Shown in pieces: positions 26,764 through 61,823 of a stretch of DNA of 64,000 nt. The stretch is from Cyanophora paradoxa CCMP329. Taxonomy: Eukaryota; Plantae; Glaucophyta. A model generated the notes under the pieces. The model did not search any database. It had not been told where the DNA came from and worked only from the letters and a program-made list of their open reading frames with translations. Where the stretch lies: NCBI GenBank assembly GCA_004431415.1, contig QPMI01000563.1, positions 62,001 to 126,000 on the forward strand, read 5' to 3'. Within the stretch, counting starts at the first letter, position 1; each line of letters starts with the position of its first letter. Both the position numbers and the translations under genes were made by a program.

Positions 26764-28682
26764 CTAGAGCTGGGGGACGGGGAGGAGGGGGGCGAGGGCG
26801 AGGGCGAGCGGGGCGATGGTGGCGGCAGCCGAGGCGGCGCCGAGGGCGGCCCATAGGCGGCGCGTCGCCGGCGGCGGCTCCGGGATCTGCCGGGGGCGTC
26901 GCCGGGGGGATGGAGAGGCCAGGGGGGCGGGAGGGGCGGGGCGCGCCTGGAGGAGCTCGGTGCGGCGGCGGGCGTCGGGGGCGTCCCACCCGGCCACGAT
27001 GCCCGGCACGTGTCCCGCCCCCACCACACCCACGATGCTCCGGCACGGCAGCGACGCTGCCGGGGCGGCGGTCAGGCCGGGCGGAGGCCGGGGCGGGGCC
27101 GCGGGGGGCACCGCGGGAGTAGCGGAGGGACCAGACGAGGTACGTGTCGCGCTCGGCGAGTAGGACCCTCTCCAGCGGCGGGCACCTGCGGGGGACCGCG
27201 TGGTTGTGGGGACGGAGGGGAGGATGGGGGGGTCGGGGGGCATGCGTACCACTCTCTGAGGCTGCGGATGGCTTCCTCCACGCGGAGGTCGGAAGGGCCC
27301 TGTACCCCTTCCGCCGCCTTGCCCTGCGTGCGGATTGGAGGGCACAACGTTTGGGGTACGGGCTCGATCCGGGGCACGGACCGACGCGATGGCTTTGGAC
27401 ATTGCGCCGGTCAATGCGAGGAGCTGCGGGGAGGGGTGAGAGGCGGAGAGGGGTTCGGGGTCCGAGGGCGGCGGGCCTGGCGAGGGGAGAGGGACGCCAC
27501 GAGGCGCCTGAAAGTGATCTGCGGAGGGCGGGCGGCGCGTCGGAGGCGGCGGCGCGGGGCGGCGCGCACGCGCGGGCCTCCAGGGGGCGATCGCCAAGGA
27601 TGATCTCCGCGTCCTGCGGCGGGCTTTCAGTGTGACTCCTCACGCCCCTCGGGGGAGCGCCCGCACCAGCGCCAGCGCCTCCTCCGCGGCGGCTCGGAAC
27701 TCCCCTCCGGCGCTCCTGTGCGGAAAGTCGCTGGGCGCGGCGCGGCGCGCGAAGGCGATGCACGAGGCTGCCGCATCGGCGCACCGGCCGGAGGCGGCGG
27801 CGGCCGTGCCCTGGACCGCCCCGACCAGCAGCGCGGCGAGGGCGGCCTGCCGGCGGGTCGGGCCGGCGCGGCGGGCGGGCCCGAGCGGGGGCGGGCGGGT
27901 CGGCACCGTCGGGCCGAACTTGCGGAACGACGCGAGCGCGTCGGCAACGTTGAGCCGCGGGCGCGACGGGCCCGCCGCCGGCTCCACGCCCTCGCCCTCG
28001 GGCGGGAACATCGTCGCCACGCGGCTGCGGCACAGCTCTGCAGGCGCGGCCGGCGGCGTCGGTGGACGCGCAGCGCCCGAAGGGTCGAAAACAAACAGGG
28101 AGCGCACCGACGACCACCGCGTCGGGCTGCACGCTGCGCATGACCTGCAGTGCGCGGGGATCGCCTATGAGCGGTCTCCGTGCACACGCAAGAGCTCCAA
28201 GCAGAGGCGCACGCGGCGGACGTCGTCCGCAGAGGAAGGGGATACGTGTGACGTTCCGACCACGTAGAACGTGCGGCCGAGCTCGGGGTCCTGCGCGAAG
28301 GCGGATCAAATGTTAGCGTGCGCGCGACTTTTCGCTAACATTTGAGCACCTGCAGCACAGTGAGCACGCCGTTAGCTAACAGGTCCGACAGCTCCCCAGA
28401 GACCATGATCTCGTCAGGATCTCGTCTCGCCGGGCGGAGAGGCCGTCGGCGAAATTGCAGCAGCTCCTCGCGTGGCGGCGTCGCGGGCGGGCTGTCGCTC
28501 TCGTGAACGCCGCCACCTGCGGAGGCGACGGCCGCCTCGAACGTCCGAGGCGCTCGGCGCGGACGCGCACGCGGCTGAACTCGGATCGCCTGTGAGCGGT
28601 CTCCGTGCACACGCAAGCTTAGCCGGAACGGCTCTCTGCCGACGAACGGCGCCGTGAACGTCGGCGCGAGGAAGGCCGCCAT
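26764..28682 (-). CDS. TraB/PrgY-domain protein with plastid-type transit peptide
   Basis: Starts MAAFLAPTF; YVVGTSHVSPSSADDVRR, VQPDAVVVELCRSR, GGEFRAA, IILGDRPLE-ITFRR, LLAERDTYL, IVGVVGAGHVPGI; hydrophobic C-tail. Confidence 0.9.
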
Positions 28683-37200: not shown

Positions 37201-40200
37201 GCCGCCGCCGCCCCCTCCCCGCTCGCCTCCCCGGCAGGCTCCGAGCGGGCGCCCGCCGCCCCCGAGGAGGCCGGCTTCGCGGACGCCTCCCGCAACAAGG
37301 CCTTCCTCAGGGCCCGCCCCCGCCCCTCTCACCCTTCCTGCACCCGCCCCGCGCCTGACTCGGCGGGGCGCAGGAGACGGCGGGGCTGATGGGGGAGCAG
37401 CTGGCGGCGCAGCTGCGCTTCTCGCTGCGCGGCTCCCGCCGCTCCATGCGCGCCCTCGCCGCCCACGGCCACCCCCGCGCCAAGTCCTTCCGCAAGGACC
37501 CCCACGGCCACGGCGCCGCCCCGGCGGGGGCGGCGGGGGAGGGGGAGGGGGAGGGGGCGGGGGAGGGCGGCGAGGCGCCCCGCTCGGTGTCGCTGGCCAT
37601 CGCCGACGCCGTGCGGCGGGCCTCGGAGTCGCCCACTAACGCCCTCCCCGGCCTCGGCGCCCTCCTGAACCTCGCCTACCCCTCCCCGCTCCCCGTCTCG
37701 CCCCCGGGCCCCCGCCCCCCCTCCGGCCCCGCGGCCCCGGGGGCGGCCGGCTTGACCCCGGCGGAGCAGCTCCAGGCGGCGATCGCCACGCCGCGCCCGC
37801 TCGTCGCCTACGGCGCCCCCCGCGCCTCGTTCCCCCCGATGGCCATGCCCCGGCCCCCGCCCCCCGCCCCCGCCGCGAAGGAGACCCCGCGCCTCGCCGT
37901 GGAGCCGCCCAAGGAGGCCGCCCCGCCGGGCGCGGGGGCGGAGGCCGGCGAGCGGCCGCGCTCGCACCTCTCGCCGAGCTCGATGCTCTACGAGCCCCTC
38001 TCCACCGTCTACTCGTCGGGCGTGCCCCCGGACTCGACCGCCCGCGCCGGCACCACCACCCGCACCCCGACCCTCGGCGAGGCCGACGAGGAGGACGAGG
38101 ACGAGGAAGAGGAAGAAGAGTACGAGGAGGAGGAGGACGACGACGAGGAGGAGGAGGAGGACGAAGAGGAGGAGGAAGAGGGGAGCTCGGCGCCGCCTGG
38201 CGAGCAGTCGCGCGCCGAGTCGCGGGTCGAGTACGGTGCGCTTCTCCGAAGCGCCTCGTCCGCAGCGGTCGCTCGGGCCCGCCTGGCGCCTCACGGGCCG
38301 GGGCTCGCAGAGTACCAGGACGGGACGACGGCTCGGGACCTGGGGATGTTCAGCCCGAGGCAGGCCGCCGAGGCGGCCCGCAGGGCGGGGCTCGGCGCCT
38401 GGGCCGGCCACGCCGCCGCCGGCACCGCATCCTCGTCCAGGAAGCGGCAGCCGGCCGGCGGCGCGGCGGCGCTGGGGAGCACGGAGGTCGGGCGCTTCTG
38501 GGCCGCCGTCGGCTCCCCAGGTGCCCCCTCCCTCGGGCCTTTCGCCGCGCTAGCGTCGGCCGAGCGCGGCGGGGCGTGCAGGGACGGGCACGGGGTCCGG
38601 GACGGCCTCGGGGGGCGCCTCGTCCGAGCCGGCGGACTCGGTGCGGCAGGCGGCGGCCCCGGCGGCGGGGGCGGACGAGGGCGCGGGGTCGCCGCGGCGG
38701 CAGGTCTTCAAGCAGCGGCGGAAGAAGCGGCGCGGGTCGGACGGCTCGGAGGGCAAGGAGGTGGGGGGCCAGGGCTCCCCCCGCCGCCGCAACAGGTGCC
38801 TCGCCGCGCCAGGGCGCCCCCCGCGCCTCGCGGGGCCGGCGTGAACGAGGGGGCGGGGGCCAGCGCGGGGGCGATGGCGTCGTGGCTGGCGACGCACGCG
38901 CACTTCACCGTGCGGGACCTCACGCAACGCGGCCTCGCCGACGGCACGGTCCCCGGCAGCGACGACGGCAGCCTCGCCACCACCCAGGCCCGCCCCCGCC
39001 CTCCAGGCCCCCGCCCCGCCAGACCAGGGCGCTGAGGGGCGGGGCCAGGGGAGCGCGAGCATGGTGGCCTGCGAGCACGGCGTCGTCGTCCTCATGGCGC
39101 GTCCTCGCTCCCCGCCCCGCGCCCCGCCCGGGCCGCCCTGCCCCCTGACCGCCGCCTCCGGCGGGCGGGCAGGAGATGGTGGGAAAGGGGACGAACGGGC
39201 GCGTATACCGGGGCCGCCTCGGGGAGCGCACCGTCGCCGTCAAGCGCGTCTCCCTCGCCGTGCGCCCCGCCCCCCGAGCCCGCCCCCTCGCCCCTCCCCT
39301 GAGGCCCCCCCCCCGCCCTGCAGGGGGCGACGGGGAAGATCGAGAAGCTGGCGCGCCTCGAGATCGCGATGCTCTCCCAGCTCAAGCACCCCAGCATCGT
39401 CGAGTCCGCCCGCCCCGCCCCGCCCCGCCCCTTCCGGGGCCTGCGGGCTGACGCGGCGGGGCCGGGGCAGGTACTACGGCACGGCGTACGACGCGGCCGG
39501 GATGCAGCACATCGACATGATCATGGAGTTCGTCGAGGGGTCCGCCCCCCGCCGCCTCCCGTCCCCTCCTCCCTGTACGTAGCGGGGCGCGGGCGCGGGG
39601 CGCAGGTGCACGCTCTCGGACTTCGTCTCGCGGCGGGGGAGCGGCCTGCCCGAGCCCGAGGCCGCCCGCCTGGTCGCCCAGGCGCGCTGCGGCCCCTCTC
39701 TTGGCTGCCTCGCTTCGGCCTGACGTCTGTCCCGCGGCAGATCCTGGACGGGCTCGCGTACCTCCACTCCAAGCGCATCATCCACAGGGACCTCAAGGCG
39801 CGCCCCCGGCGCCCTGCCCCCTCCTCCAGTTGCCGTACCCCCTCCGAGGCCCTCCGCAGCCGGCGAACGTGATCGTGACGCCGGACCTCGTCGTCAAGAT
39901 CATCGACTTCGGCGTCTCCGCGCAGGTCCGGCACCGCGCGGTTCAACTGGGCGCACCCTTTCCTTTCTCCGATCCTGATTCGCGGACCCTGCTCTCCTCG
40001 AAAGCTCCGCGACCTGGCGGCGCTGCGGAGGAGCTGCGTGGGTACCCCCTGGTACCTCGCCCCCGAGGTCATCTGCCTCGAGCAGTACAGCTACCAGGTA
40101 CACCCGCCCCGCTTTCTCCCCTCCCTCCCATTTTTACCGTACCCCGCTCCAGGCCGACTGCTGGTCTCTCGGCTGTTCACTTGCGGAGCTCCTCACCGGG

Positions 40201-40586
40201 CACAGGCGCGCCGTGCCGCGTACCCTCCAGCCCTTCTACCCCGTTTGTGAACCGGGGTACAGGGTCTACGAGGACTTCAACGCGGTGGCGTGCATGTTCC
40301 GCATGGTGAACGACCCGCACCCGCCCATACCCCCCTCCGCCAGGTCCGAGGCCCCGCGCTGCCCCCCTCTTCCTGTGTCCGCCCTCTGAGCAGCCTCCCC
40401 GCAGCCCCGCCTGCGCCGCATTCCTGCAGGCGTGCTTCACGCGCAACTGGCGCGACGTGCGCTCTCCCGCCCTCGCCTCCGCCTCGCCCGTCGCCTCTGA
40501 TGCCCCGCGCGCTGGCGGCTCCACGCCTGCAGCGCCCTACGGCCGAGCAGCTGCGGCGACATCCTTTCATCACCTCCAATCTCTGA
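34241..40586 (+). CDS. Large Ser/Thr protein kinase with C-terminal MAP3K/STE (Cdc15/SepA-like) domain
   Basis: VGKGTNGRVY, VAVK, EIAMLSQLKHPSIV, MEFVEG, HRDLK-PAN, DFG, VGTPWYLAPE, DCWSLGC, RPTAEQLRRHPF; long low-complexity N-terminal part with an acidic tract; start approximate. Confidence 0.88.
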
Positions 40587-41341
40587 TCTCTCCCGACTCT
40601 CATACTATAACTCCTGTCGACATTGTTGCCTTATATGATTCGTAGTTAGGCCCGGCTCCCAGGCCATTGGCCAATCATACAAGCTGAGACTTACTCATTG
40701 CAAATAGTCATGATCAGTACCCCCCTGTTGTTCAGTCGACGTCGTGTACCCAGACGGACCAGTCGCACGCCACGCCGCGCCCGAGCCTCGGAGCACATAT
40801 GCATGGGGACCCTCGGGGGATCGACATCGGAGGATCGATATCTAATATACGTATACGTAATGTGTGCATGCGCAGCTTCGAATTCATGCGGGAGTCTCGG
40901 GAGTCCGCGGGAGTCTTCAAGCAAGTTCGCGAGTTTTATTTTGCTTCATTCGGTCATGATCATGAACAACGTTAACATACAAGTTTTTGCAGGACGTCGA
41001 CAGCTTATCGAATTAACTGTTTTGTTTTCAGGACAACCCTGAAAGAGGGTTGTCCTGCAGCTGCCTATGCGCATGCGATTAACACTTGCGCGTGGTGCAC
41101 TTGGCGCAAATTTTGAAATGCTGTGCGGATGCTGTCTATAGCTAGCTATAGCCGATTGGGAATTAAAAATGCAAGCACACGGAGCTGTGGTCGAGCAGGC
41201 ATGCAGCCTGCAAGACATGGAAAGCAGCTGCAGATCTAGAGAGACGTCGGGCCGGAACAGCAAAATCAAAGACGAGCTGCAGGTGATGATGATAACCGAG
41301 CTAGTAGCTATAGGCATAGCTATGAAGAAGCTTAAGAAGCA

Positions 41342-41380
41342 ATAGTAGTAGTAGCAGTAGTAGTAGTAGTAGTAGTAGTG
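41342..41380. repeat. (TAG)n microsatellite
   Basis: tagtagtagtagcagtagtagtagtagtagtagtagtg. Confidence 0.9.
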
Positions 41381-41619
41381 ATGAAGAAGGGGAAGTGGTA
41401 GCCTAGTAGCGCGGCGCTATTGCACGTGTACATGCAAGTGGAAACTGAGAGCGCAGGATGAGTTGGAACGCTGTGCGAGTCAAGCATGAGGGCACGGGGC
41501 TCTGTGACGTTGGTCTGGTAATGGTGTAGAACGCAACCAGCTGCGGAAGAACTAAGAATCGACGGAAGCTGTCGACGTGGACCATCGATATCATTTTTCC
41601 GTGCCTTTTTCGTGGGCAA

Positions 41620-44600
41620 TCAGGGGGTAATCGCTATCCGTGCTCGCTTCTTGGGACAGCTCGAGCAGCTCGCCAATTCCTTCAGCTCCTCAAGTTTCTG
41701 GATCGCGCACGATCGCGATCAGTGCCTGTGGCGGCTGGAAGAGTCGGGAATCCGCACCCGCTGAGGCGTGCACGGGGCGGGCTCGAATGGGACCTGATTG
41801 CCAGCAGCAGGCATCTCCTCGACGATTCGATCCTCACCGTACTAGTAACGAGGAGGCCTTGCAATTAAATCCAAATTCGCGATGCGCAGTTCTAGCAAAA
41901 AGACGTACGCGTGCTTTCATCAAGCTTGCAAACTTGGACGTATCGGCAGGGGTGCAGGAAGCGAACATGATGCCAGGTCCCGCAAGCGCATCTTGTCGCT
42001 GCCTGAGCTCTTCCAGCAGTGCCTTCGCCATCTTCTTTTCACCGCATGTCACTAAGAAGTTCGACTTGTCCTTCAGAAGCACCACGAAACAGGTGAAGTT
42101 GTCCCACTGGTTTGAGTACTGGTCTGAACTGGACCCATTGCAATTGACGAAGGCCCGCATCTCCGTGATGTGGCAATCATCGTGTTTGTGCCCCTCGCTC
42201 ATGCAAACGTAGCAGCTGCGAAAATTTCAATTCAGTTATGAGAATTCGAGAACAGTTATGAGAATTCGAGAACAAGATTGAATATTTATATAATTAATCA
42301 CGCACAACTCGGCAGAAGCGTGCAGGAATTCGGAAGGCATCAGCCGGACTGAGAGATCAACCTGAGCTGCAATGAAGTCGACGTTGCTGGGATCTGGATC
42401 CTGAACTCTACTCGAGAAGTTGCAGCGGCAAAAAATCAGAGAATAAAGCATTCTTTGACTTTTAGATTTGCGGAAAAGCTCGAAGGGGGGCTCACTTGAT
42501 TGGGGGTGCATGAAGACTGCAGATTCTGTCAATGTCAAGCTCGAGTTTCAATGCAGCATCTTCACCGATAAGCGATTTCATGGTCTTCAATGCATGATCA
42601 GAGCTTGTCATGAGCACGTTGTCTTCGCCGTACTGCTCATCGATATGTTACAAGCATATAATAGAACTGGAAGCACTAGCGGGCGCGGAGAAAAAGAAAC
42701 GCACTGTCGCTGTTAAGCGGATCGCCAGCTTCTTTTCAAGGGCCGCGTCGCCATGTGCCACCGCAGCTGCCAGGACGCGGTCTGGTTGATCGATATCGGA
42801 TATCGACGCCGCTGCACGAGCTTCTTCCAAGGAACCTCGAAGAACCCAAAGTTTTCCGCTCTCAAGATGGAAAACAAAGAGGTTGTCCGTCTGCTGTCGG
42901 AGCTGACTGCGCAAGCTGTAGTTAGCACTGAAACATCTATCCGAGAAAACTTGTTTTAACTTTCGAATGTACATGTACGAACCTAAGGGTTGACATCACA
43001 CAAGGTTGAGGTACCGAAGAGCTTGACCGAGAGCCGTCAAGGACAAGATGCTCGCCATACTGAGGTGCACAATCGTAATCATAAGAATCTATAACGCAGC
43101 CATACAAAGCAACAGAGGTAAATATTAATATTTGCAAGCTTAAGATACGTACCCGCAGCTTGAGCCCCACCACGAGCTTCCTCCAAACGTTCTCGTCCCC
43201 CTCACGAAGTCGCATTATCCGTGAGTAGTGCCCGAGCTGCTCAAGCCGCTTCTCGGCACTAATGTGATTGTCACTGTGATCCAACCAGATTTTCCCGTTA
43301 AGTAGCAGCACCACGGTGATCTGAAACTCTTTTTCTGTTCGGAATTCGGCGCTCAGAAGAGGGCACTGGTGCCGAGAATGCCCCATGTCCAAGCAGTAGA
43401 AGCAGCTGCACACGAAAACAAGTTCGTTACAAAAATAATGAGTGCAGATAGATATATAGCTATAGGGCCATCGAGCGCGCACGCATTTGTCGACCGTAAG
43501 GGCCGCGGCCGGAGCTTGATCAGATCTGAATCTGATTGAAGGCATGTCGCGATGTGAACTGCAACGCGAGTCGCCGCACTGGAAGCCGAGATTTCATAAG
43601 GGACTAGATAAGTCGAAATCTGAGTTTGCATGCTGCGGCTGAGAGCTTCGACGTGGAAGTCCGAGAAGCCCATCTCCCTGTTGAGAACGGCGATAAGGCA
43701 CTCTGGACCCTCGGTTCCATGCAAATGAGTTCTGAGTCCGCATTCTCCGCATCTAGATGGAAGCTTGTAGCTGCGAGCCGACAGTAATGAGCGATAGAAC
43801 CGTACGCGTGCTTTCTTGATGCATATTATTACTTTTTCACGGTGTCGTTGAGAACCTCGAGACTGGAAATTTTGGCGATGTCAATCTCCACGGCATACTT
43901 CTCGAGAGCTGACTTGTATGTTGTCCAATGGGAACCAAGAACCTTGTCGACGCCAAACTGCAAGATTATGGAATTACTTTATCGCAGAGAATGCGAGCTC
44001 GAGGCCAGGGGACTCGTGATCAATCGCCAGCCCGCGATCGGGCATATAAAAGATAATCGAGTGCAAGTGAGGAAGATCTAGATCTACTATGCTAACACCG
44101 AGATATATGCCTCTTCTACATTAAGTAGCTATATATATAGTATAATATAGCTATGTAGCTTTAAAACCGATTAGCTATAAAGAGAAAAGTAGGTGAGGTC
44201 GGAGCGCTCACGATGATCATGAGCAGGATGGTCAGTTCCTCCTCGAGACCGACGCCACCATGTGCCACCGCCAGAACACGGACCAGATGATAGAATGCCG
44301 TTGCGGGGGCCCGGCCTTGCTCATGCTCACGCAAACGCTCTTGCACCGATCGCTTTGTAGTGCCCACGTATATCTTCGAAATTTCATATGCATCCTTGCT
44401 CTTGATGAGTACGGCGTACACATGCTCCTTGCCACAACTCGCACTGTAATCACGCGTGCACGTGCGGTACGACACCCGGCGTGAGCTCAAGCTTGGGGAC
44501 GCGATCGCGAGCTACTGTCAAACTCACCTTGACTGAACAGAGCACAGGAGATCCGACCGCGAGGCGCCGCCGGGCGACACGTACGCACTGCTGGCAGAAC

Positions 44601-44830
44601 TCGAGTTCAGTGCTCCGCCTGCGAACTCAAAATGAGAGCTCGAACCAAATTCATTTCAAACATATGCATGCATATGCGTACGCTTCTCCTCCCCGGTCAC
44701 GGTGCCTGCATGAGTCGCGACCTGCGCCACGGCCGCGGTCGAGGCCTCCGGATCCGCATGCACAGTCACAGCTGCGGAAGGTTGCCGCTCCGCAGTCAAG
44801 ATGGTCTCGTCCAAACAGGACAGCAGGCTC
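41620..44830 (-). CDS. Intron-containing GIY-YIG endonuclease with two CCHC zinc knuckles and three degenerate GIY-YIG-like repeats
   Basis: HVYAVLI..KIYVGTTKRSVQERLREHEQG..T..LEEELTILLMII|FGVDKVLGS; CFYCLDMGHSRHQC (43363-43404); CYVCMSEGHKHDDC (42173-42214); phase-compatible GT-AG introns; start and stop approximate. Confidence 0.75.
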
Positions 44831-45469
44831 CGCGGCTGGAACTGTTTGCGGCCGGCCGGCACTAGTACTAGTACTGCAGCTGACTGAGGATCAAGATCTG
44901 TACATGTGCGCGCGCGCGGAATTAATACATAGTAATAGTCTCGGATCCGATAACTTTTTCTAGTTTTCGCTGGGTTCTCGGTTTTTTTTCCAACGGAACC
45001 CAACTTCCTGAGACGGAGACATCAACGCCCGCGTAACGGCGCCAGTTCCCGGATAGTCCCAAGTCTAAGGACCTCATAGCCCCGACCAGCGCCGCTGAAA
45101 GACGCGTCCTAAGCGACCTCGGGATTGCATATCGACATACACTCTCTTCCGGGCGGTCGCGGAGCGCGGCCTGGGCGCCGAAAATGACGATGAGCTCTAT
45201 ACGAAGTGAATTCTCGAGCGGCAGCCCTTAATCTGCGGCAGCAGCTGAGATCGCCCTCGCCCGTTTGCACGGCCAAAAAAAGGCCGAAAAGAAAAACCGG
45301 GCCAAGCGTACCCCTGTCGATTGCAAACGGTCAAAACAGCTCAGCGGCTGCAGCAGATGCAGAAGTGATGCTTCTGAACGCTTCAGCTTTCTCTTCGCAC
45401 GCCAGCGCTTTCGCTTTTTGGTCAGGGCTTCGCGTGCTGGACCGTGCTGGACGCCAGATCTCGCGTGCT

Positions 45470-46310
45470 GGACCAGGTGAGCCGGCGGCATGTCCTGCTT
45501 CTAGGGCCGACGAGCTATGATCGAACTGCGCGCAGGTCGCTCGGTCGCGCTCGCTCGCCGGCCGAAGGGCTTCGGGCGGCGGCAGATCTCGCTCGTTGTA
45601 CCAGGTGAGCCGTGAGGCGGCGGCACGCCCTGCATCTAGTGCCGACGAGCTCTGATCGAACTGCGCGCAGGTCGCTCGGTCGCGCTCGCTCGCCGGCCGC
45701 AGGGCTTCGGGCGGGGGGACCCGCCGCGCCAGACCTCGCTCGCTGTACCAGGTGAGCCGTGAGCCGGCGGCACGCCCTGCGTCTAGTGCCGACGAGCTCT
45801 GATCGAACTGCGCGCAGGTCGCTCGGTCGCGCTCGCTCGCCGGCCGAAGGGCTTCGGGCGGCGTATCCGCAGCGCCAGATCTCGCTCGCTGTACCAGGTG
45901 AGCCGTGAGCCGGCGGCACGCCCTGCGTCTAGTGCCGACGAGCTCTGATCGAACTGCGCGCAGGTCGCTCGGTCGCGCTCGCTCGCCGGCCGCAGGGCTT
46001 CGGGCGGCGGATCCGCAGCGCCAGATTTCGCTCGCTGCACCAGGTGAGCCGTGAGCCGGCGGCACGCCCTGCGTCTAGTGCCGACGAGCTCTGATCGAAC
46101 TGCGTGCAGGTCGCTCGGTCGCGCTCGCTCGCCGGCCGCAGGGCTTCGGGCGGCGGATCCGCAGCGCCAGATTTCGCTCGCTGCACCAGGTGAGCCGTGA
46201 GCCGGCGGCACGACCTGCGTCTAGTGCCGACGAGCTCTATATATAGCTAGTGCCCGCAGCTGCGCATGCAGGCCGCTCGGTCGCGCTCGCTCGCCGGCCG
46301 CAGGGCTTCG
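45470..46310 (+). repeat. Tandem array of ~146-bp units (5 full plus partial)
   Basis: TCGAACTGCG recurs at 45521, 45656, 45803, 45949 and 46095 (spacing 135, 147, 146, 146). Confidence 0.95.
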
Positions 46311-47449
46311 CGATGGGGCGGCCGCGGGACCCGCCGCACGTGCACGCGCCATTTAGCTATGCAATATAAGTTTGTTCAATTTATCACATGTCACATATAT
46401 ATCTTGATCTCACACCACTATTACTGCTCCCCATGCCTGACTCCGGGAAAGATCGGCGCCCCACCTGACTCCGGGCCAATGCTGCTATCCCTGTCCCCTT
46501 ATACCTTGCCTCCAAACAGCGCCACCCGAGGGCATTACGGAGCCCGGTTCTCGTTAATCGCTGTCTCAGCAAATCTATCCAATGATCCGCGGCCCGCAAC
46601 CACGCGTACGCACCGTGTACAGGTGGCATTGCAGCGGCGACAGGGTCTGCGCGGACAAGGTCTGCGGCGACACCGTGGGGAGACCCCTCGCGTGGGGACG
46701 CCGCTGACGTCGACGTCGACGTCGACGCGCACAGCTGCAGCCCCGATTCTGCGCGCCGTGCACGGGAACACGTGCACGCGGTCGACGTCAGCCATAGTAC
46801 TAGTGTGCACTAAGTAAGCACTAAGCTAGCCATAGCTACAGCATACAGTACTCGATTTATCGATGTACCGGCTGCAGCGCTAGCTGCGGTACTAGTACAT
46901 CGATGCCCGCTGCGCACGCATGCCCGGCCCGCGGCCGGCCCACTAGCACTAGCTAGTACTAGTACTACCGCGTGCGCACCGCGGGGAGACCCCTCGCGAT
47001 CCTGGAGGTAGTCAGTTGTCATGGCGACAGGCACATTGTTGCCGCCATCTGCAGGGCCTGCGCGAAAGAGTTCGAGAAATGGTCGACGAGACATATGCAT
47101 GCAATGTGACCGATCGTGGGGAAAACACGCACGGCTCTTCTCCACTTCATCTTTATTCGGCACGGCATCACCGGAAGCACAGCCAGAGCCAGCCTGCGGC
47201 ATCCTAGCTGCCGCGGCCGGCTGGCTAGTTTCGGGAGCCGGCCGCGGGGCGGTCAGTGGCCCTGCGCTCTACCGCGGCTGTTGCTCGCCTAGACGCGTTG
47301 GCGCGGCTTGGCGAGAAGCAGTCGCGGAGGCGAGGGCCACCGTCCCCGGGTACAGACACCGGTCGGCTGGTCGAGCGCTGATCATGAATCGACCGGTGGC
47401 GGTCGATCAGACTCTGGGCAGCTGGAGTGCGCACCCGAGTTCAGCCGCG

Positions 47450-49255
47450 TAAGCTTGCGTGTGCACGGAGACCGCTCGACGGCGATCCGAGTTCAGCCGC
47501 GTGCGCATCCGCGCCGAGCGCCTCGGTCGTTCGAGGCGGCCGTCGCCTCCGCAGGTGGAGGCGTTCACGAGAGCGACAGCCCGCCCGCGACGCCGCCACG
47601 CGAGCTGCTGCAGTTCCGCCGGCGGCCTCTCCGCCCGGCGAGACGAGATCCTGGCGAGATCATGGCGTCTGGGGAGCTGTCGGACTTGTTAGCTAACGGC
47701 GTGCGCATGCTCACTGTGCTGCAGGTGCTCAAATGTTAGCGAAAAGTCGCGCGCACGCTAACATTTGATCCGCCTTCGCGCAGGACCCCGAGCTCGGCCG
47801 CACGTTCTACGTGGTCGGAACGTCACACGTGTCCCCTTCCTCTGCGTACGACGTCCGCCGCGTGCGCCTCTGCTTCGAGCTCGCCGCGTGGCCCGTCCCC
47901 TCCGACGCCGCGCACTGCAGGTCATGCGCAGCGTGCAGCCCGACGCGGTGGTCGTCGGTGCGCGCGGGGTTCCTCTTCGGGCGCTGCGCGTCCGCCGACG
48001 CCGCCGGCCGCGCCTGCAGAGCTGTGCCGCAGCCGCGTGGCGACAATGTTCCCGCCCGAGGGCGAGGGCGAGGAGCCGGCGCCGGGCCCGTCGCGCCCGC
48101 CCCTCAACGTCGCCGACGCGCTCGCGTCGTTCCGCAAGTTCGGCCCGACGGTGCCGACCCGCCCGCCCCCGCTCGGGCCCGCCCGCCAGCCGGCCCGACC
48201 CGCCGGCAGGCCGCCCTCGCCGCGCTGCTGGTCGGGGCGGTCCAGGGCACGGCCGCCGCCGCCTCCGGCCGGTGCGCCGATAGGGCAGCCTCGCGCATCG
48301 CCTTCGCGCGCCGCGCCGTGCCCAGCGACCTTCCGCGCAGGAGCGCCGGAGGGGAGTTCCGAGCCGCCGCGGAGGAGGCGCTGGCGCTGGTGCGGGCGTT
48401 CCCCCGAGGGGTGTGAGGAGTCACACTAAAAGCTCGCCGCAGGACGCGGAGATCATCCTTGGCGACCGCCCCCTGGAGGCCCGGGCGTGCGCGCCGCCCC
48501 GCGCGGGCGCCTCTGACGCGGCGCCCGCCCTCCGCAGATCACTTTCAGGCGCCTCGTGGCGTCGCTCTCCCCTCGCCAGGCCCGCCGCCCGCGGACCCCG
48601 TACCCCCTCCGCCTCTCACCCCTCCCCGCAGCTCCTTGCATTGGCTGGCGCAATGTCCAAAGCCATCGCGTCGGTTCGTGCCCCGGATCGAGCCCGTACC
48701 CCAGACGGTGTGCCCTCCAATCCGCACGCAGGGCAAGGCGGCGGAAGGGGTACAGGGCCCCTCGGACCTACGCGTGGAGGAGGCCATCCGCAGCCTCAGA
48801 GAGTGGCATGCATGCCCCCCGACCCCCCCATCCTCCCCTCCGTCCCCACAACGACGCGGTCCCCCGCAGGTGCCCGCCGCTGGAGAGGGTCCTGCTCGCC
48901 GAGCGCGACACGTACCTCGTCTGGTCCCTCCGCTACTCCCGCGGTGCCCCCCGCCGCCCCGCCCCGGCCCCCGCCCCGCCTCACCGCCCCCCCGGCAGCG
49001 TCGCTGCCGTGCCGGAGCATCGTGGGTGTGGTGGGGGCGGGACACGTGCCGGGCATCGTGGCCGGGTGGGACGCCCCGGACGCCCGCCGCCGCACCGAGC
49101 TCCTCGAGGCGCGCCCCGCCCCTCCCGCCCCCCTCTCCATCCCGCCCCGCGACGCCCCCGGCAGATCCCGGAGCGGCCGCCCGGGACGCGCCGCCTGTGG
49201 GCCGCCCTCGGTGCCGCCTCGGCCGCCCTCGGTGCCGGCCGGCCGGCCGCCTCGG
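47450..49255 (+). pseudogene. Inverted duplicate of the TraB gene lacking the MAAF start and hydrophobic C-tail (pseudogene or chimeric gene)
   Basis: High identity to the reverse complement of ~26840-28621 including introns; first in-frame ATG at ~47662. Confidence 0.85.
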
Positions 49256-51787
49256 CCGCGCCGGCACCACCACCCGCACCCCGACCCTCGGCGAGGCCGA
49301 CGAGGAGGACGAGGACGAGGAAGAGGACGAAGAAGACGAGGATGAGGACGAGGACGACGACGAGGAGGAGGACGAAGAGGAGGAATAGGAGGAAGAGGGG
49401 AGCTCGGCGCCGCCTGGCGAGCAGTCGCGCGCCGAGTCGCGGGTGGAGTACGGTGCGCTCCTCCGAAGCGCCCCATCCGCAGCGGTCGCTCGGGCCCGCC
49501 TGGCGCCTCACGGGCCGGGGCGCGCAGAGTACCAGGACGGGACGACGGCGCGGGACCTGGGGATGTTCAGCCCGAGGCAGGCCGCCGAGGCGGCGCGCAG
49601 GGCGGGACTCGGCGCCTGGGCCGGCCACGCCGCCGCCGGCACCGCCTCCTCGTCCAGAAAGCGGCAGCCGGCCGGCGGCGCGGCGGCGCTGGGTACGGAG
49701 GTCGGGCGCTTCTGGGCCGCCGTCGGCTCCCCAGGTGCACCCCCCTCGAGCCTTTCGCCGCACTACCGTCGGCTGAGCGCGGCGCTGCGCGCAGGGACGG
49801 GCACGGGGTCCGGGACGGCCTCGGGGGGCGCCTCGTCCGAGCCGGCGGACTCGGCGCGGCAGGCGGCGGCCCCGGCGGGGCGGGCGAGGGCGCGGGGTCG
49901 CCGCGGCGGCACGTCTTCAAGCAGCGGCGGAAGAAGCGGCGCGGGTCGGACGGCTCGGAGGGCAAGGAGGTGGGGGGCCAGGGCTCCCCCGCCGCCGCAA
50001 CAGGTGCCTCGCCGCGCCAGAGCCCCCCCGCGCCTCGCGGGGCGGGCGTGAACGAGGGGGCGGGGCCAGCGCGGGGGCGATGGCGTCGTGGCTGGCGACG
50101 CACGCGCACTTCACCGTGCGGGACCTCACGCAGCGCGGCCTCGCCCCGGCACGGTCCCCGCCAGCGACGACGGCAGCCTCGCCACCACCCAGGCCCGCCC
50201 CCGCCCGCCCCGCCCCGCCCCGCCAGGCCAGGTCGCTGAGGGGCGGGGCCAGGGGAGCGCGAGCATGGTGGCCTGCGAGCACGGCGTCGTCGTCCTCATG
50301 GCGCGTCCTCGCCCCCCGCCCCGCGCCCCGCCCGGGCCCCCCGCCCCGCTGACCGGCGCCTCCCCCGTGCGCGCAGGAGATGGTGGGGAAGGGGACGAAC
50401 GGGCGGGTGTACCGGGGCCGCCTCGGGGAGCGCACCGTCGCCGTCAAGCGCGTCTCCCTCGCCGTGCGCCCCGCCCCCCGAGCCCGCCCCCTCGCCCCTC
50501 CCCTGAAGGCCCCCTCGTCGTGCACGCAGGGGGCGACGGCGAAGGTCGAGAAGCTGGCGCGCCTCGAGATCGCGATGCTCTCCCAGCTCAAGCACCCCAA
50601 CATCGTCGAGTCCGCCCCCCCCGCCCCGCCCCGCCCCTTCCGGGGCCTGCGGGCTGACGCGGCGGGGCCGGGGCAGGTACTACGGCACGGCGTACGACGC
50701 GGCCGGGATGCAGCACATCGACATGATCATGGAGTTCGTCGAGGGGTCCGCCCCCCGCCGCCTCCCGTCCCCTCCTCCCTGTACGTAGCGGGGCGCGGGC
50801 GCGGGGCGCAGGTGCACGCTCTCGGACTTCGTCTCGCGGCGGGGGAGCGGCCTGCCCGAGCCCGAGGCCGCCCGCCTCGTCGCCCAGGCGCGCTGCGGCC
50901 CCCTCTCTTGGCTGCCTCGCTTCGGCTTGACGCCTGTCCCGCGGCAGATCCTGGACGGGCTCGCCTACCTCCACTCCAAGCGCATCATCCACAGGGACCT
51001 CAAGGCGCGCCCCCGGCGCCCTGCCCCCTCCTCCAGTTGCTGTACCCCCTCCGAGGCCCTCCGCAGCCGGCGAACGTGATCGTGACGCCGGACCTCGTCG
51101 TCAAGATCATCGACTTCGGCGTCTCCGCGCAGGTCCGGCACCGCGCGGTTGAACTGGGCGCACTGCTTCTCCGATCCTGATTCGCGTACCCTGCTCTCCT
51201 CGAAAGCTCCGCGACCTGGCGGCGCTGCGGAGGAGCTGCGTGGGTACCCCCTGGTACCTCGCCCCCGAGGTCATCTGCCTCGAGCAGTACAGCTACCAGG
51301 TACCCCCGCCCGCTCCCTCCCCTCCCTCCCATTTTTATCTTACCTCGCTCCAGGCCGACTGCTGGTCCCTCGGCTGTTCCCTCGCGGAGCTCCTCACCGG
51401 TCACAGGCGCGCCGTGCCGCGTACCCTCCAGCCCTTCTACCCCGTTTGTGAACCGGGGTACAGGGTTTACGAGGACTTCAACGCTGTGGCGTGCATGTTC
51501 CGCATGGTGAACGACCCGCACCCGCCCATACCCCCCTCCGCCAGGTCCGAGGCCTCGCGCTGCCCCCCTCTTCCTGTGTCCGCCCTCTGAGCAGCCTCCC
51601 CGCAGCCCCGCCTGCGCCGCATTCCTGCAGGCGTGCTTCACGCGCAACTGGCGCGACGTGCGCTCTCCCGCTCTCGCCTCCGCCTCGCCCGTCGCCTCTG
51701 ATGCCGCGCGCGCTGGCGGCTCCACGCCTGCAGCGCCCTACGGCCGAGCAGCTGCGGCGACATCCTTTCATCACCTCCAACCTCTGA
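49256..51787 (+). pseudogene. Direct duplicate of the 3' part of the kinase gene; kinase domain exons appear intact
   Basis: Matches 38042-40586; TAG at 49386-49388 and a 1-nt deletion near 50146 upstream, but an open spliced kinase frame from ATG 50265 to TGA 51787. Confidence 0.85.
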
Positions 51788-52378
51788 CCCCCTCCCGAAT
51801 TCAGCTGATCGGATGTCATGCTTTTCCAGTCAGCAGGTAGTGCACTCATTTAGCTATAGTTATCGATGTGTAGTATTAGCTCTGCAGGCTCGCGCGCAAA
51901 GTTAGCGCTGCAAATGAAAGATCGAGTGGGCATGATCAGCTAGCGCTGATCTGGCAGGTGCGCTTTCAGGTGCCAGTCAGGCGCATGGCCGGAATTTACG
52001 TGCAGGCCAGATGATAAGGGGAAGCAGCACTGATTAACCTCATGAGGCTGAGGCGGCTTCATCGAATTTTCGAATTTATTGAATGGCCGGGGATGGTTTT
52101 GAGCTGGGGTACACGCTCGGCAGGCTCGAGCTTTGGCGCCGGCGCCAGCGCATCAACCGCAGCATTCCATACGGCCGGCGAGCACATTTTAGAGCGCGCT
52201 CTACGAAACCTGAGCCCGCCCAACTGCAACGGTGACCGCCCGTGGTCAGGTTTCGTGTGCGCCGATTCGGTTGCTGGGCTCCCCTCCGCTTTCCCGGGCG
52301 CAGCTGACCCTTCCGCCGGCTTGCAGGACTCTGAACAAAGAATTTTGACTCTTCATCCCTGCGCCCAGCCCGTCGAAT

Positions 52379-53200
52379 ATGGCAACATCGGCAACAATGG
52401 CAACTCGGTCGCTGTCTCCTCCGACGCCGGGCGCCGGTGCCGCGGAAGTGCCACTGATGCTTCACGTCGCTTCCTCGCCCCTCTTCGATGGCACAGTTCC
52501 CGAGACCCCGCCCGCCGCGTACGACGACACGGAGGTCAACACCGACCAGGGGGCGAGCGTGTTCCAGCTGTTCCAGTCGCTCGTTTCGTCTGCACATGCG
52601 GATGGCTCCACCTTCTCATCGCCCCGCCTGGTCCGCGCCCGAGCGGCTGGACCAAACGGCTGCCCCGCGCTCAATTTGATGCGCAGCCGTCCCCGATGCT
52701 GCTGGCGACGCCGGCGGGCGCGCCAGAAGACGACGTGTTTTCTTGGTTCACGCTCGAGGATCCCAACGGGTCACCCGGCCCCGCCCTGCCGACCGCTTCC
52801 CAGCCGGACGCCGTCCGGCCCACCGCCGTCCGCCCGCCCTCCCCGCGCCAGCCGCCCGCGGCCGCCTCCGCCGTTCCGAGCACTTCTTGCGGCTGCGGCA
52901 AGTCGCCGTCCCGGTGCGTGCGACCAGAATCGTTCCGAGCGCGTGACCGGAAGCGTTCCGAGCGCTGACCTGTCCCTCTTCCCGCCGCAGCTGCCACGAG
53001 AAGCGGGCGGCTCGCGTGCACTGCTCGCTCCCCGCATCGAGGTCCGCGCCGCCCTTGGTCCGCTGCTCCCTTGCGCCGCGGCCTGACGGCTCGTCTCCTG
53101 GGCGGCAGGGGCAAGAGCCGGCCCAAGCCCGTCGTCAGCACGCGCCACCCGGCGCCCCACTGAATTTTCGGAGCCCGCCAGGCCGCCAGTCCCCGTGACG
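52379..53200 (+). CDS. Hypothetical Ser/Pro/Ala-rich protein
   Basis: ATG ORF MATSATMATRSLSPPTPG..VFQLFQ followed by intron-like segments; no domain recognised. Confidence 0.35.
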
Positions 53201-59217: not shown

Positions 59218-59472
59218 ATACAAGCCCCATCCGGATCCTCCATCGCCCCGCTTCTTCGGCGCGTCCGATTTTTTTGTTTTTAAACTGATTTGCACACCAC
59301 GAAACTCTATATGTGGGGACACTGCATCACTACAAAAGAAATAGGCCGCCCTGGCGACAATCGCCCGTCGCCTGTAGCTTCTATGCACAAGGGCTGCCCG
59401 AATCGCGTCCTAGAGCACGGTTGGGAGCGGTTCGGTGCGGTTGTTGAAAAAGCGCGCTCCGCGCTGGAGCCC

Positions 59473-61823
<2,351 letters not shown>

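Follow-up and report, generated by a model that had tools for sequence, protein, structure and literature searches.

The GIY-YIG nucleases I-TevI, SLX1, At-HIGLE, and ANKLE1 and the N-terminal domain of UvrC share a catalytic set of Tyr, Tyr/Gly, Arg, His, and Glu, and tandem dead copies of the domain are described for none of them in the literature that we searched. Penelope-like elements carry a GIY-YIG domain, with a subfamily motif of its own, together with a reverse transcriptase (RT) and terminal repeats. GIY-YIG nucleases also serve homing and PLV elements (PMC12220804). Cyanophora paradoxa, the source of the gene described here, harbors GEVEs, which are clusters of viral genes, and 21% of its genes are methylated, mostly silent, and enriched for viral origin (PMC12344493).

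Closest in layout to the gene are GIY-YIG + CCHC proteins of giant viruses, including KNV1 A0A1V0SKB8, Fadolivirus A0A7D3R283, Orpheovirus A0A2I2L4G4, LCMAC202 A0A481YWZ4, and a Yasminevirus protein, which bear the motif YG.D[NK]VRGG. We collected members of this family by DNA pattern, word search, and metagenome scan. The family is abundant, and no characterized member was found in the literature searched. A confident structural model of the family (pLDDT 90) matched proteins of Klosneuvirus, Fadolivirus, Orpheovirus, Yasminevirus, and Marseillevirus with E values of 1e-11 to 1e-16, fell in Nucleocytoviricota clusters, and resembled I-TevI (Z 6.4, rmsd 2.6 over 73) and UvrC (Z 5.2) in fold. 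The viral genes are intronless, with a median length of about 275 aa, about 29% GC, and one GIY-YIG domain; they often have two or three knuckles, and dead variants occur, with 31 of the 212 Asn-type members (about 15%) lacking all tested residues. A dead subfamily (L005, L007, L217, L238, L247, and others), mostly of about 300 aa, has no knuckle and a long C-terminal region and keeps YG.D.VRGG, and a Lys subgroup (L204, L216, L221, L227, L233, and ~30 more IMG/VR loci) reads YG.DKVRGG and keeps the remaining catalytic residues.

We analyzed a window of 64,000 nucleotides (the whole stretch of DNA studied; C. paradoxa CCMP329, contig QPMI01000563.1, positions 62,001 to 126,000) and found a gene that, judged by its sequence, is an unusual, four-module, intron-rich form within this known giant-virus family. 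It is probably a virus-derived nuclease gene that was expanded after intron gain, long kept intact, and is now silent. A literature search revealed no paper describing this architecture, and GIY is absent from the supplements of PMC6704402.

Gene structure and reading frame

The gene lies on the minus strand, running from 44829 to 41620, and a splice-site model predicts 13 exons separated by 12 GT-AG introns. An earlier note on this DNA, prepared from the letters alone, had given coordinates and residues that proved to be as described, and we placed them on this strand. When joined, the exons form a single stop-free frame of about 650 to 710 codons that terminates at TGA 41620-41622. Over about 630 codons, stops make up 2 to 4% of each of the other five frames, so chance does not account for the open one, with the proviso that the introns were chosen post hoc. 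Retention of intron 12 would bring a stop near 41719. The introns measure 60 to 93 nt, in agreement with the mean of 86 nt in C. paradoxa (PMC6704402), with one exception of 254 nt (43958-44211), which is AT rich and three times as long as the others and may hold an insertion.

The 5' end admits two models. Exon 1 (44682-44829), whose 5' limit is uncertain, encodes a low-complexity N-terminal part and has a GTACGC donor at 44681. The preferred exon 2 (44618-44528), with an AAG|GTGAGT donor in phase 2, has the phase and AG| context of the intron before A2 and gives 710 codons without a start; a 141-nt intron 2 with a short exon 2 (44618-44585) was dropped in favor of this 91-nt exon. No in-frame ATG, and thus no secure start codon, was found upstream of A1 in this best-spliced model. 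The alternative starts at an ATG at 44711 and encodes 647 aa, and it depends on a microexon of 5 nt (44532-44528) and on a weak donor. The N terminus of this alternative (44711-44420, minus strand) contains C-x2-C-x4-C-x3-H directly before A1, possibly a further zinc finger.

Downstream, the exons follow the order A, linker, knuckle, and B twice. Exon 3 (44212-44443) encodes the N half of A1, and exon 4 (43833-43957) encodes its C half, with an FGVDKV.GS motif and a helix. Linker 1 is exon 5 (43483-43770), exon 6 (43153-43405) holds zinc knuckle 1 (43363-43404) and the degenerate N half of B1, and exon 7 (42983-43059) holds the C part of B1 (YGEHLV). In the second half, exon 8 (42705-42915) and exon 9 (42496-42632; YGEDNV and a helix) encode A2, exon 10 (42306-42407) is linker 2 with the 2-2 phase of linker 1, exon 11 (41909-42215) contains zinc knuckle 2 (42173-42214) and the degenerate N half of B2, and exon 12 (41758-41841) encodes the C part of B2 (YGEDRI). 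Exon 13 (41620-41697) provides a tail with a basic PKKR stretch and the stop.

Module A1 and its viral relatives

Exon 3 alone matched Pfam PF01541 (GIY-YIG) with an E value of 3.4e-4 and 21.3 bits, a half-domain query that falls just below the cutoff of 22.6, and was called GIY-YIG in the ESM atlas (0.93). Against the alignment of the viral GIY-YIG + CCHC family, hhalign gave E values of 8.5e-5 for the N half of A1 and 0.01 for the C half, and with an anchored profile of the family motif the start and end of the A1 exons ranked 1/554 and 2/530, respectively. The earlier note had suggested a likeness to such giant-virus proteins and had reported that A1 keeps the GIY-YIG residues, and both statements hold: VY (Y at 44418), YVG (44370), R (44337), H (44325), and a Glu (44244) 11 residues before FG are all present. 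A1 also carries the family E-11, T-7, M-3, and YG.D[NK]VRGG motif, with RGG changed to LGS, and shares with the viral proteins the RxxxH spacing, (F/Y)G.DKV, and the order GIY-YIG, helix, knuckle. These results support placing A1, by its sequence, with the Nucleocytoviricota family by ancestry, and its residues give it the look of a catalytically complete nuclease domain.

At the DNV position, where most members have Asn, A1 has Lys (DKV). The 15-residue spacing suggests that this position is the equivalent of I-TevI N90 and ANKLE1 N565; the ANKLE1 Asn is essential, N565D having an effect of >50,000-fold (PMC10287932). We considered and rejected the idea that Lys inactivates A1: DKV occurs naturally in 36 viral loci, 35 of which keep YxG, R/H, and E, and the Lys is therefore no sign of death.

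The Cyanophora gene differs from the viral ones, to which it is about 25 to 30% identical, in having 12 introns, four modules, and host-gene neighbors. The distance from YG to the knuckle, 34 aa in 221 of 225 viral members, is 138 and 80 aa here. Among 268 distinct family proteins none had four modules or even more than two; this sample was selected by motif and is almost all viral, so uniqueness among eukaryotes is unproven. The one protein with two modules, the metagenomic P0082 (L122:506-1405, JGI 3300055275; 299 aa), has an intact module followed by a degenerate one, as in the Cyanophora gene, but stops at two modules, has neither knuckles nor introns, and probably arose independently. Given P0082 and the dead fraction of viral members, degeneration is not special to the Cyanophora gene.

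Other searches returned little. Word searches with A1 and with knuckle 1 plus B1 found no homologue, both being limited by single-exon queries and a length filter. A search of 1.8 billion sequences with A1, again a half-domain query, found none either; its sole match, P0001, was a repetitive artifact. Exon queries had no match in IMG/VR, PDB sequences, PHROGs, or NCBIfam, and a phage tblastn gave only matches at E 4, to GIY-YIG genes. The gene has no RING, LEM/ankyrin, UvrC, or homing DNA-binding domain. It is not an orthologue of SLX1 or ANKLE1, an identity that the earlier note had raised against its own reading: no exon had a Pfam match to RING (SLX1) or to ankyrin plus LEM (ANKLE1), and no homologue was found in PDB or the other databases.

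Shared introns and internal duplication

The earlier note had proposed that the gene was duplicated internally after intron gain, citing introns just before (F/Y)G in A1, B1, and A2 and an intron at the same position before both knuckles. These introns are present, and B2, which the note had overlooked, has one as well. A phase-0 intron thus lies directly before (F/Y)G in all four modules (A1, 43957; B1, 43059; A2, 42632; B2, 41841), and both CX2CX4HX4C knuckles begin one base past a phase-2 acceptor (43405 and 42215). Counted on the minus strand, the island that holds the gene has 125 YAG sites, of which 4 precede (F/Y)G, versus 5 of ~2,640 elsewhere in the window, an enrichment at about 1e-4 as reckoned by hand and post hoc. 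Altogether, five intron positions are common to both halves (phase 2 before A, 0 in A, 2 after the A helix, 2 before the knuckle, and 0 in B), one of them to all four modules, and the repeat unit [A-linker-knuckle-B] is phase 2-2 symmetric. The bases flanking the introns are not proto-splice sites, which makes independent intron gain seem unlikely.

The modules are also alike in sequence. A1 and A2 are similar in both the N half (z 6.5) and the C half (z 3.4) and share a 46-nt DNA repeat of 72% identity, knuckle 1 resembles knuckle 2 (z 5.2), and the linkers are weakly similar (p 0.026). A2 keeps the Glu at -11 and DNV but no longer has Y, YxG, R, or H, and its N and C halves matched the viral family with hhalign E values of 0.004 and 0.005; A2 is clearly, on these comparisons, a copy of A1. 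Knuckle 1 matched Pfam zf-CCHC at E 0.02. A third, remnant knuckle (CX2CX4H, last Cys displaced) lies in the A1 linker (43698-43751, minus strand), 48 aa after the A1 FG; exon 5, which encodes it, had no Pfam match. This remnant may be the original first knuckle. From the shared intron positions and the likeness of the modules, we conclude that two rounds of internal duplication came after intron gain.

Genomic context and transcripts

The gene sits in a low-GC island (40597-44925; about 50% GC versus about 70 to 75%) that is present once. In each of two DNA runs a single contig of 4,401 nt covered 40550-44950 without differences; the assembly is therefore correct here, and neither run yielded a further copy of at least 80% nucleotide identity. 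GC3 of the gene is 0.62, compared with 0.95 to 1.0 in the flanking kinase gene and most exons of an S-adenosylhomocysteine hydrolase-like gene, and 10 of its 12 introns have a GC of 0.30 to 0.47, compared with about 0.78 to 0.90 in host introns. The intergenic DNA of the region is also about 50% GC, so that a host gene of low expression might have the same appearance.

No RNA contig fell on the gene in two runs, which were taken as RNA by guess and whose contigs prove presence, not absence; the same two runs gave one contig over the 3' end of the neighboring kinase gene, up to 40758. In four RNA runs the share of the gene's words was 0.00. These data hint that the gene is silent.

To its right, the island ends at the TA|CATAG boundary of a multicopy repeat (44926-46390), the boundary lying some 100 bp 5' of exon 1. 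This left boundary is sharp and follows TA in each of four or more distinct flanks. In the DNA and RNA runs, many short variant contigs extend from 44925 rightwards, related copies occur among the RNA contigs, and the repeat contains a 146-bp tandem array of about six units (45423-46337; TRF). Its second end was not found within the window.

Origin and fate of the gene

The reading that we prefer, to which we give roughly an even chance, is that the gene derives from a virus and belongs to this genome's compartment of virus-like or mobile, low-GC genes, being stranded as a single copy and probably silenced. A one-domain giant-virus GIY-YIG + zinc-knuckle gene would have entered a eukaryotic nucleus and acquired spliceosomal introns; a first duplication would have turned the GIY module into A-knuckle-B, and a second would have doubled the phase 2-2 unit. 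The modules would then have diverged to 20 to 35% identity with the frame remaining open, which points to a long period under purifying selection for the protein. A1 would nick or cut DNA by means of Tyr/His, Arg, and a Glu-bound metal, by analogy with GIY-YIG chemistry. The knuckles may grip single-stranded nucleic acid, whereas A2, B1, and B2, as dead copies, may lengthen the binding surface or set its specificity. The repeat at 44926 perhaps separated the gene from its start or promoter.

The GC3 and intron GC values, the missing RNA contigs, and the GEVEs and methylated genes of this alga (PMC12344493) favor such a compartment and silence, and giant-virus ancestry, silence, and atypical GC apparently recur in this gene as in those. 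Weighing against it are the lack of element ends and of a second viral gene in the island: GEVEs are clusters, whereas this is one isolated, intron-rich gene. If the reading is right, a giant-virus gene gained introns first after nuclear entry, was then duplicated twice, and finally lost catalysis in three of four copies. Virus-derived protist genes are usually described as decaying; the Cyanophora gene would instead have been elaborated. Any activity of A1 would also shed light on the viral family, including the members that naturally carry DKV or are dead.

The gene might instead have been domesticated as an expressed, condition-specific antiviral or DNA-repair nuclease, its three dead modules serving as arms for binding or as decoys for viral inhibitors, which we regard as possible and rather doubtful. 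The earlier note had likewise inferred domestication, into one active and three binding-only domains, possibly for defense. Twelve introns, two duplication rounds, and an intact frame imply long nuclear selection, the single copy lies between ordinary host genes, and a nuclear signal might reside in the basic PKKR stretch of the tail. However, no transcript contig was found in the RNA runs, codon and intron GC are not host-like, neither the exon word searches nor the 1.8-billion-sequence search yielded a homologue, and a secure ATG is absent. That the gene functions specifically in algal defense, an active GIY-YIG being guided by the three dead modules and the knuckles as a repeat-type reader of nucleic acid, induced by infection, or acting as a decoy for viral inhibitors, is unlikely in our estimation.

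We likewise see little likelihood that the gene was only recently disabled, its first exon or promoter having been lost through insertion of the 44926 repeat and nearby rearrangement too lately for stops to accumulate. The repeat boundary close to exon 1, the other copies with TA-ending flanks, the best-spliced model lacking an in-frame ATG, and the local breakage signaled by 93 to 95% copies in a composite at 47450-51798 would fit such an event, but the ATG model (44711 plus microexon, 647 aa) exists, no upstream remnant was identified, and all 12 introns keep GT-AG.

Derivation of B1 and B2

The earlier note had called B1, A2, and B2 catalytically degenerate repeats. For A2 this holds, and all three modules are devoid of Y, G, R, and H, B1 and B2 retaining no catalytic residue at all; a GIY-YIG fold for B1 and B2 found less support. 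An AF2 model of exon 11 alone (knuckle 2 and the N half of B2) was uninformative (pLDDT 43, best Z 3.2), showing a low-confidence beta-beta-alpha arrangement, and the top ESM atlas matches of B1 were KH-like (KH_6) clusters (0.90). It could be argued that only A1 and A2 derive from GIY-YIG, that B1 and B2 are another small domain, for example KH-like, and that their YG introns are coincidental. The similarity between B1 and B2, which was not significant in the pairwise module comparison, and their hhalign probabilities of <5% would agree with this.

Several observations nevertheless make this a distinctly improbable account. Both B1 and B2 have the phase-0 intron before YG, the start of exon 7 in B1 ranked 3/554 with the anchored motif profile, the end of B2 fits the family positions D-12, K-9, and F/Y-8 (rank 12/530), and the C part of B2 resembles the C half of A2 (z 4.3). 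Matches to the family overall were weak (p about 0.01 to 0.04), and against the whole viral family only the knuckle of B2 was matched by hhalign, whereas the N half of B1 gave an E value of 0.009. With the profile of the dead viral subfamily, B1 reached p 0.015 (hhalign E 0.025) and B2 reached p 0.01 (hhalign E 0.043), the hhalign control giving E 0.73; shuffle tests agreed with the hhalign results, and linker controls were negative. B1 and B2 are thus probably, not certainly, GIY-YIG derived.

Flanking rearrangements

The suggestion of the earlier note that the gene might be the engine of an uncharacterized element is disfavored: although GIY-YIG nucleases serve such elements and rearrangements adjoin the gene, an autonomous selfish nuclease spreading by cutting and repair is very unlikely for a gene that is single copy at 80% identity, with no TIR, LTR, or TSD found around the island and, as that note had already remarked for RT, helicase, and transposase, no RT, helicase, recombinase, or capsid gene in or around it. 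The gene and Penelope-like elements both put a GIY-YIG domain into the nuclear genome of a eukaryote; the gene differs from them in lacking RT and terminal repeats and in its GIY-YIG subfamily motif.

Beyond the repeat, on its right, lies a composite (47450-51798) made up of two host segments from the vicinity, with junctions at 47450, 49227-49253, and 51798. Its first part is an inverted 93% copy of 26824-28621 (a TraB/PrgY/gumN-like gene), and its second is a 95% copy of 38039-40596 (the 3' part of the protein kinase gene). The composite looks like a templated insertion or a gene capture by the adjacent repeat. Directly after it lies a 308-codon open reading frame (52042-52968, plus strand) with no Pfam match. 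Farther along, on the minus strand, the S-adenosylhomocysteine hydrolase-like gene (59381-61202) has a GC3 of 0.65 in its 5' part and 0.96 to 1.0 in its 3' part.
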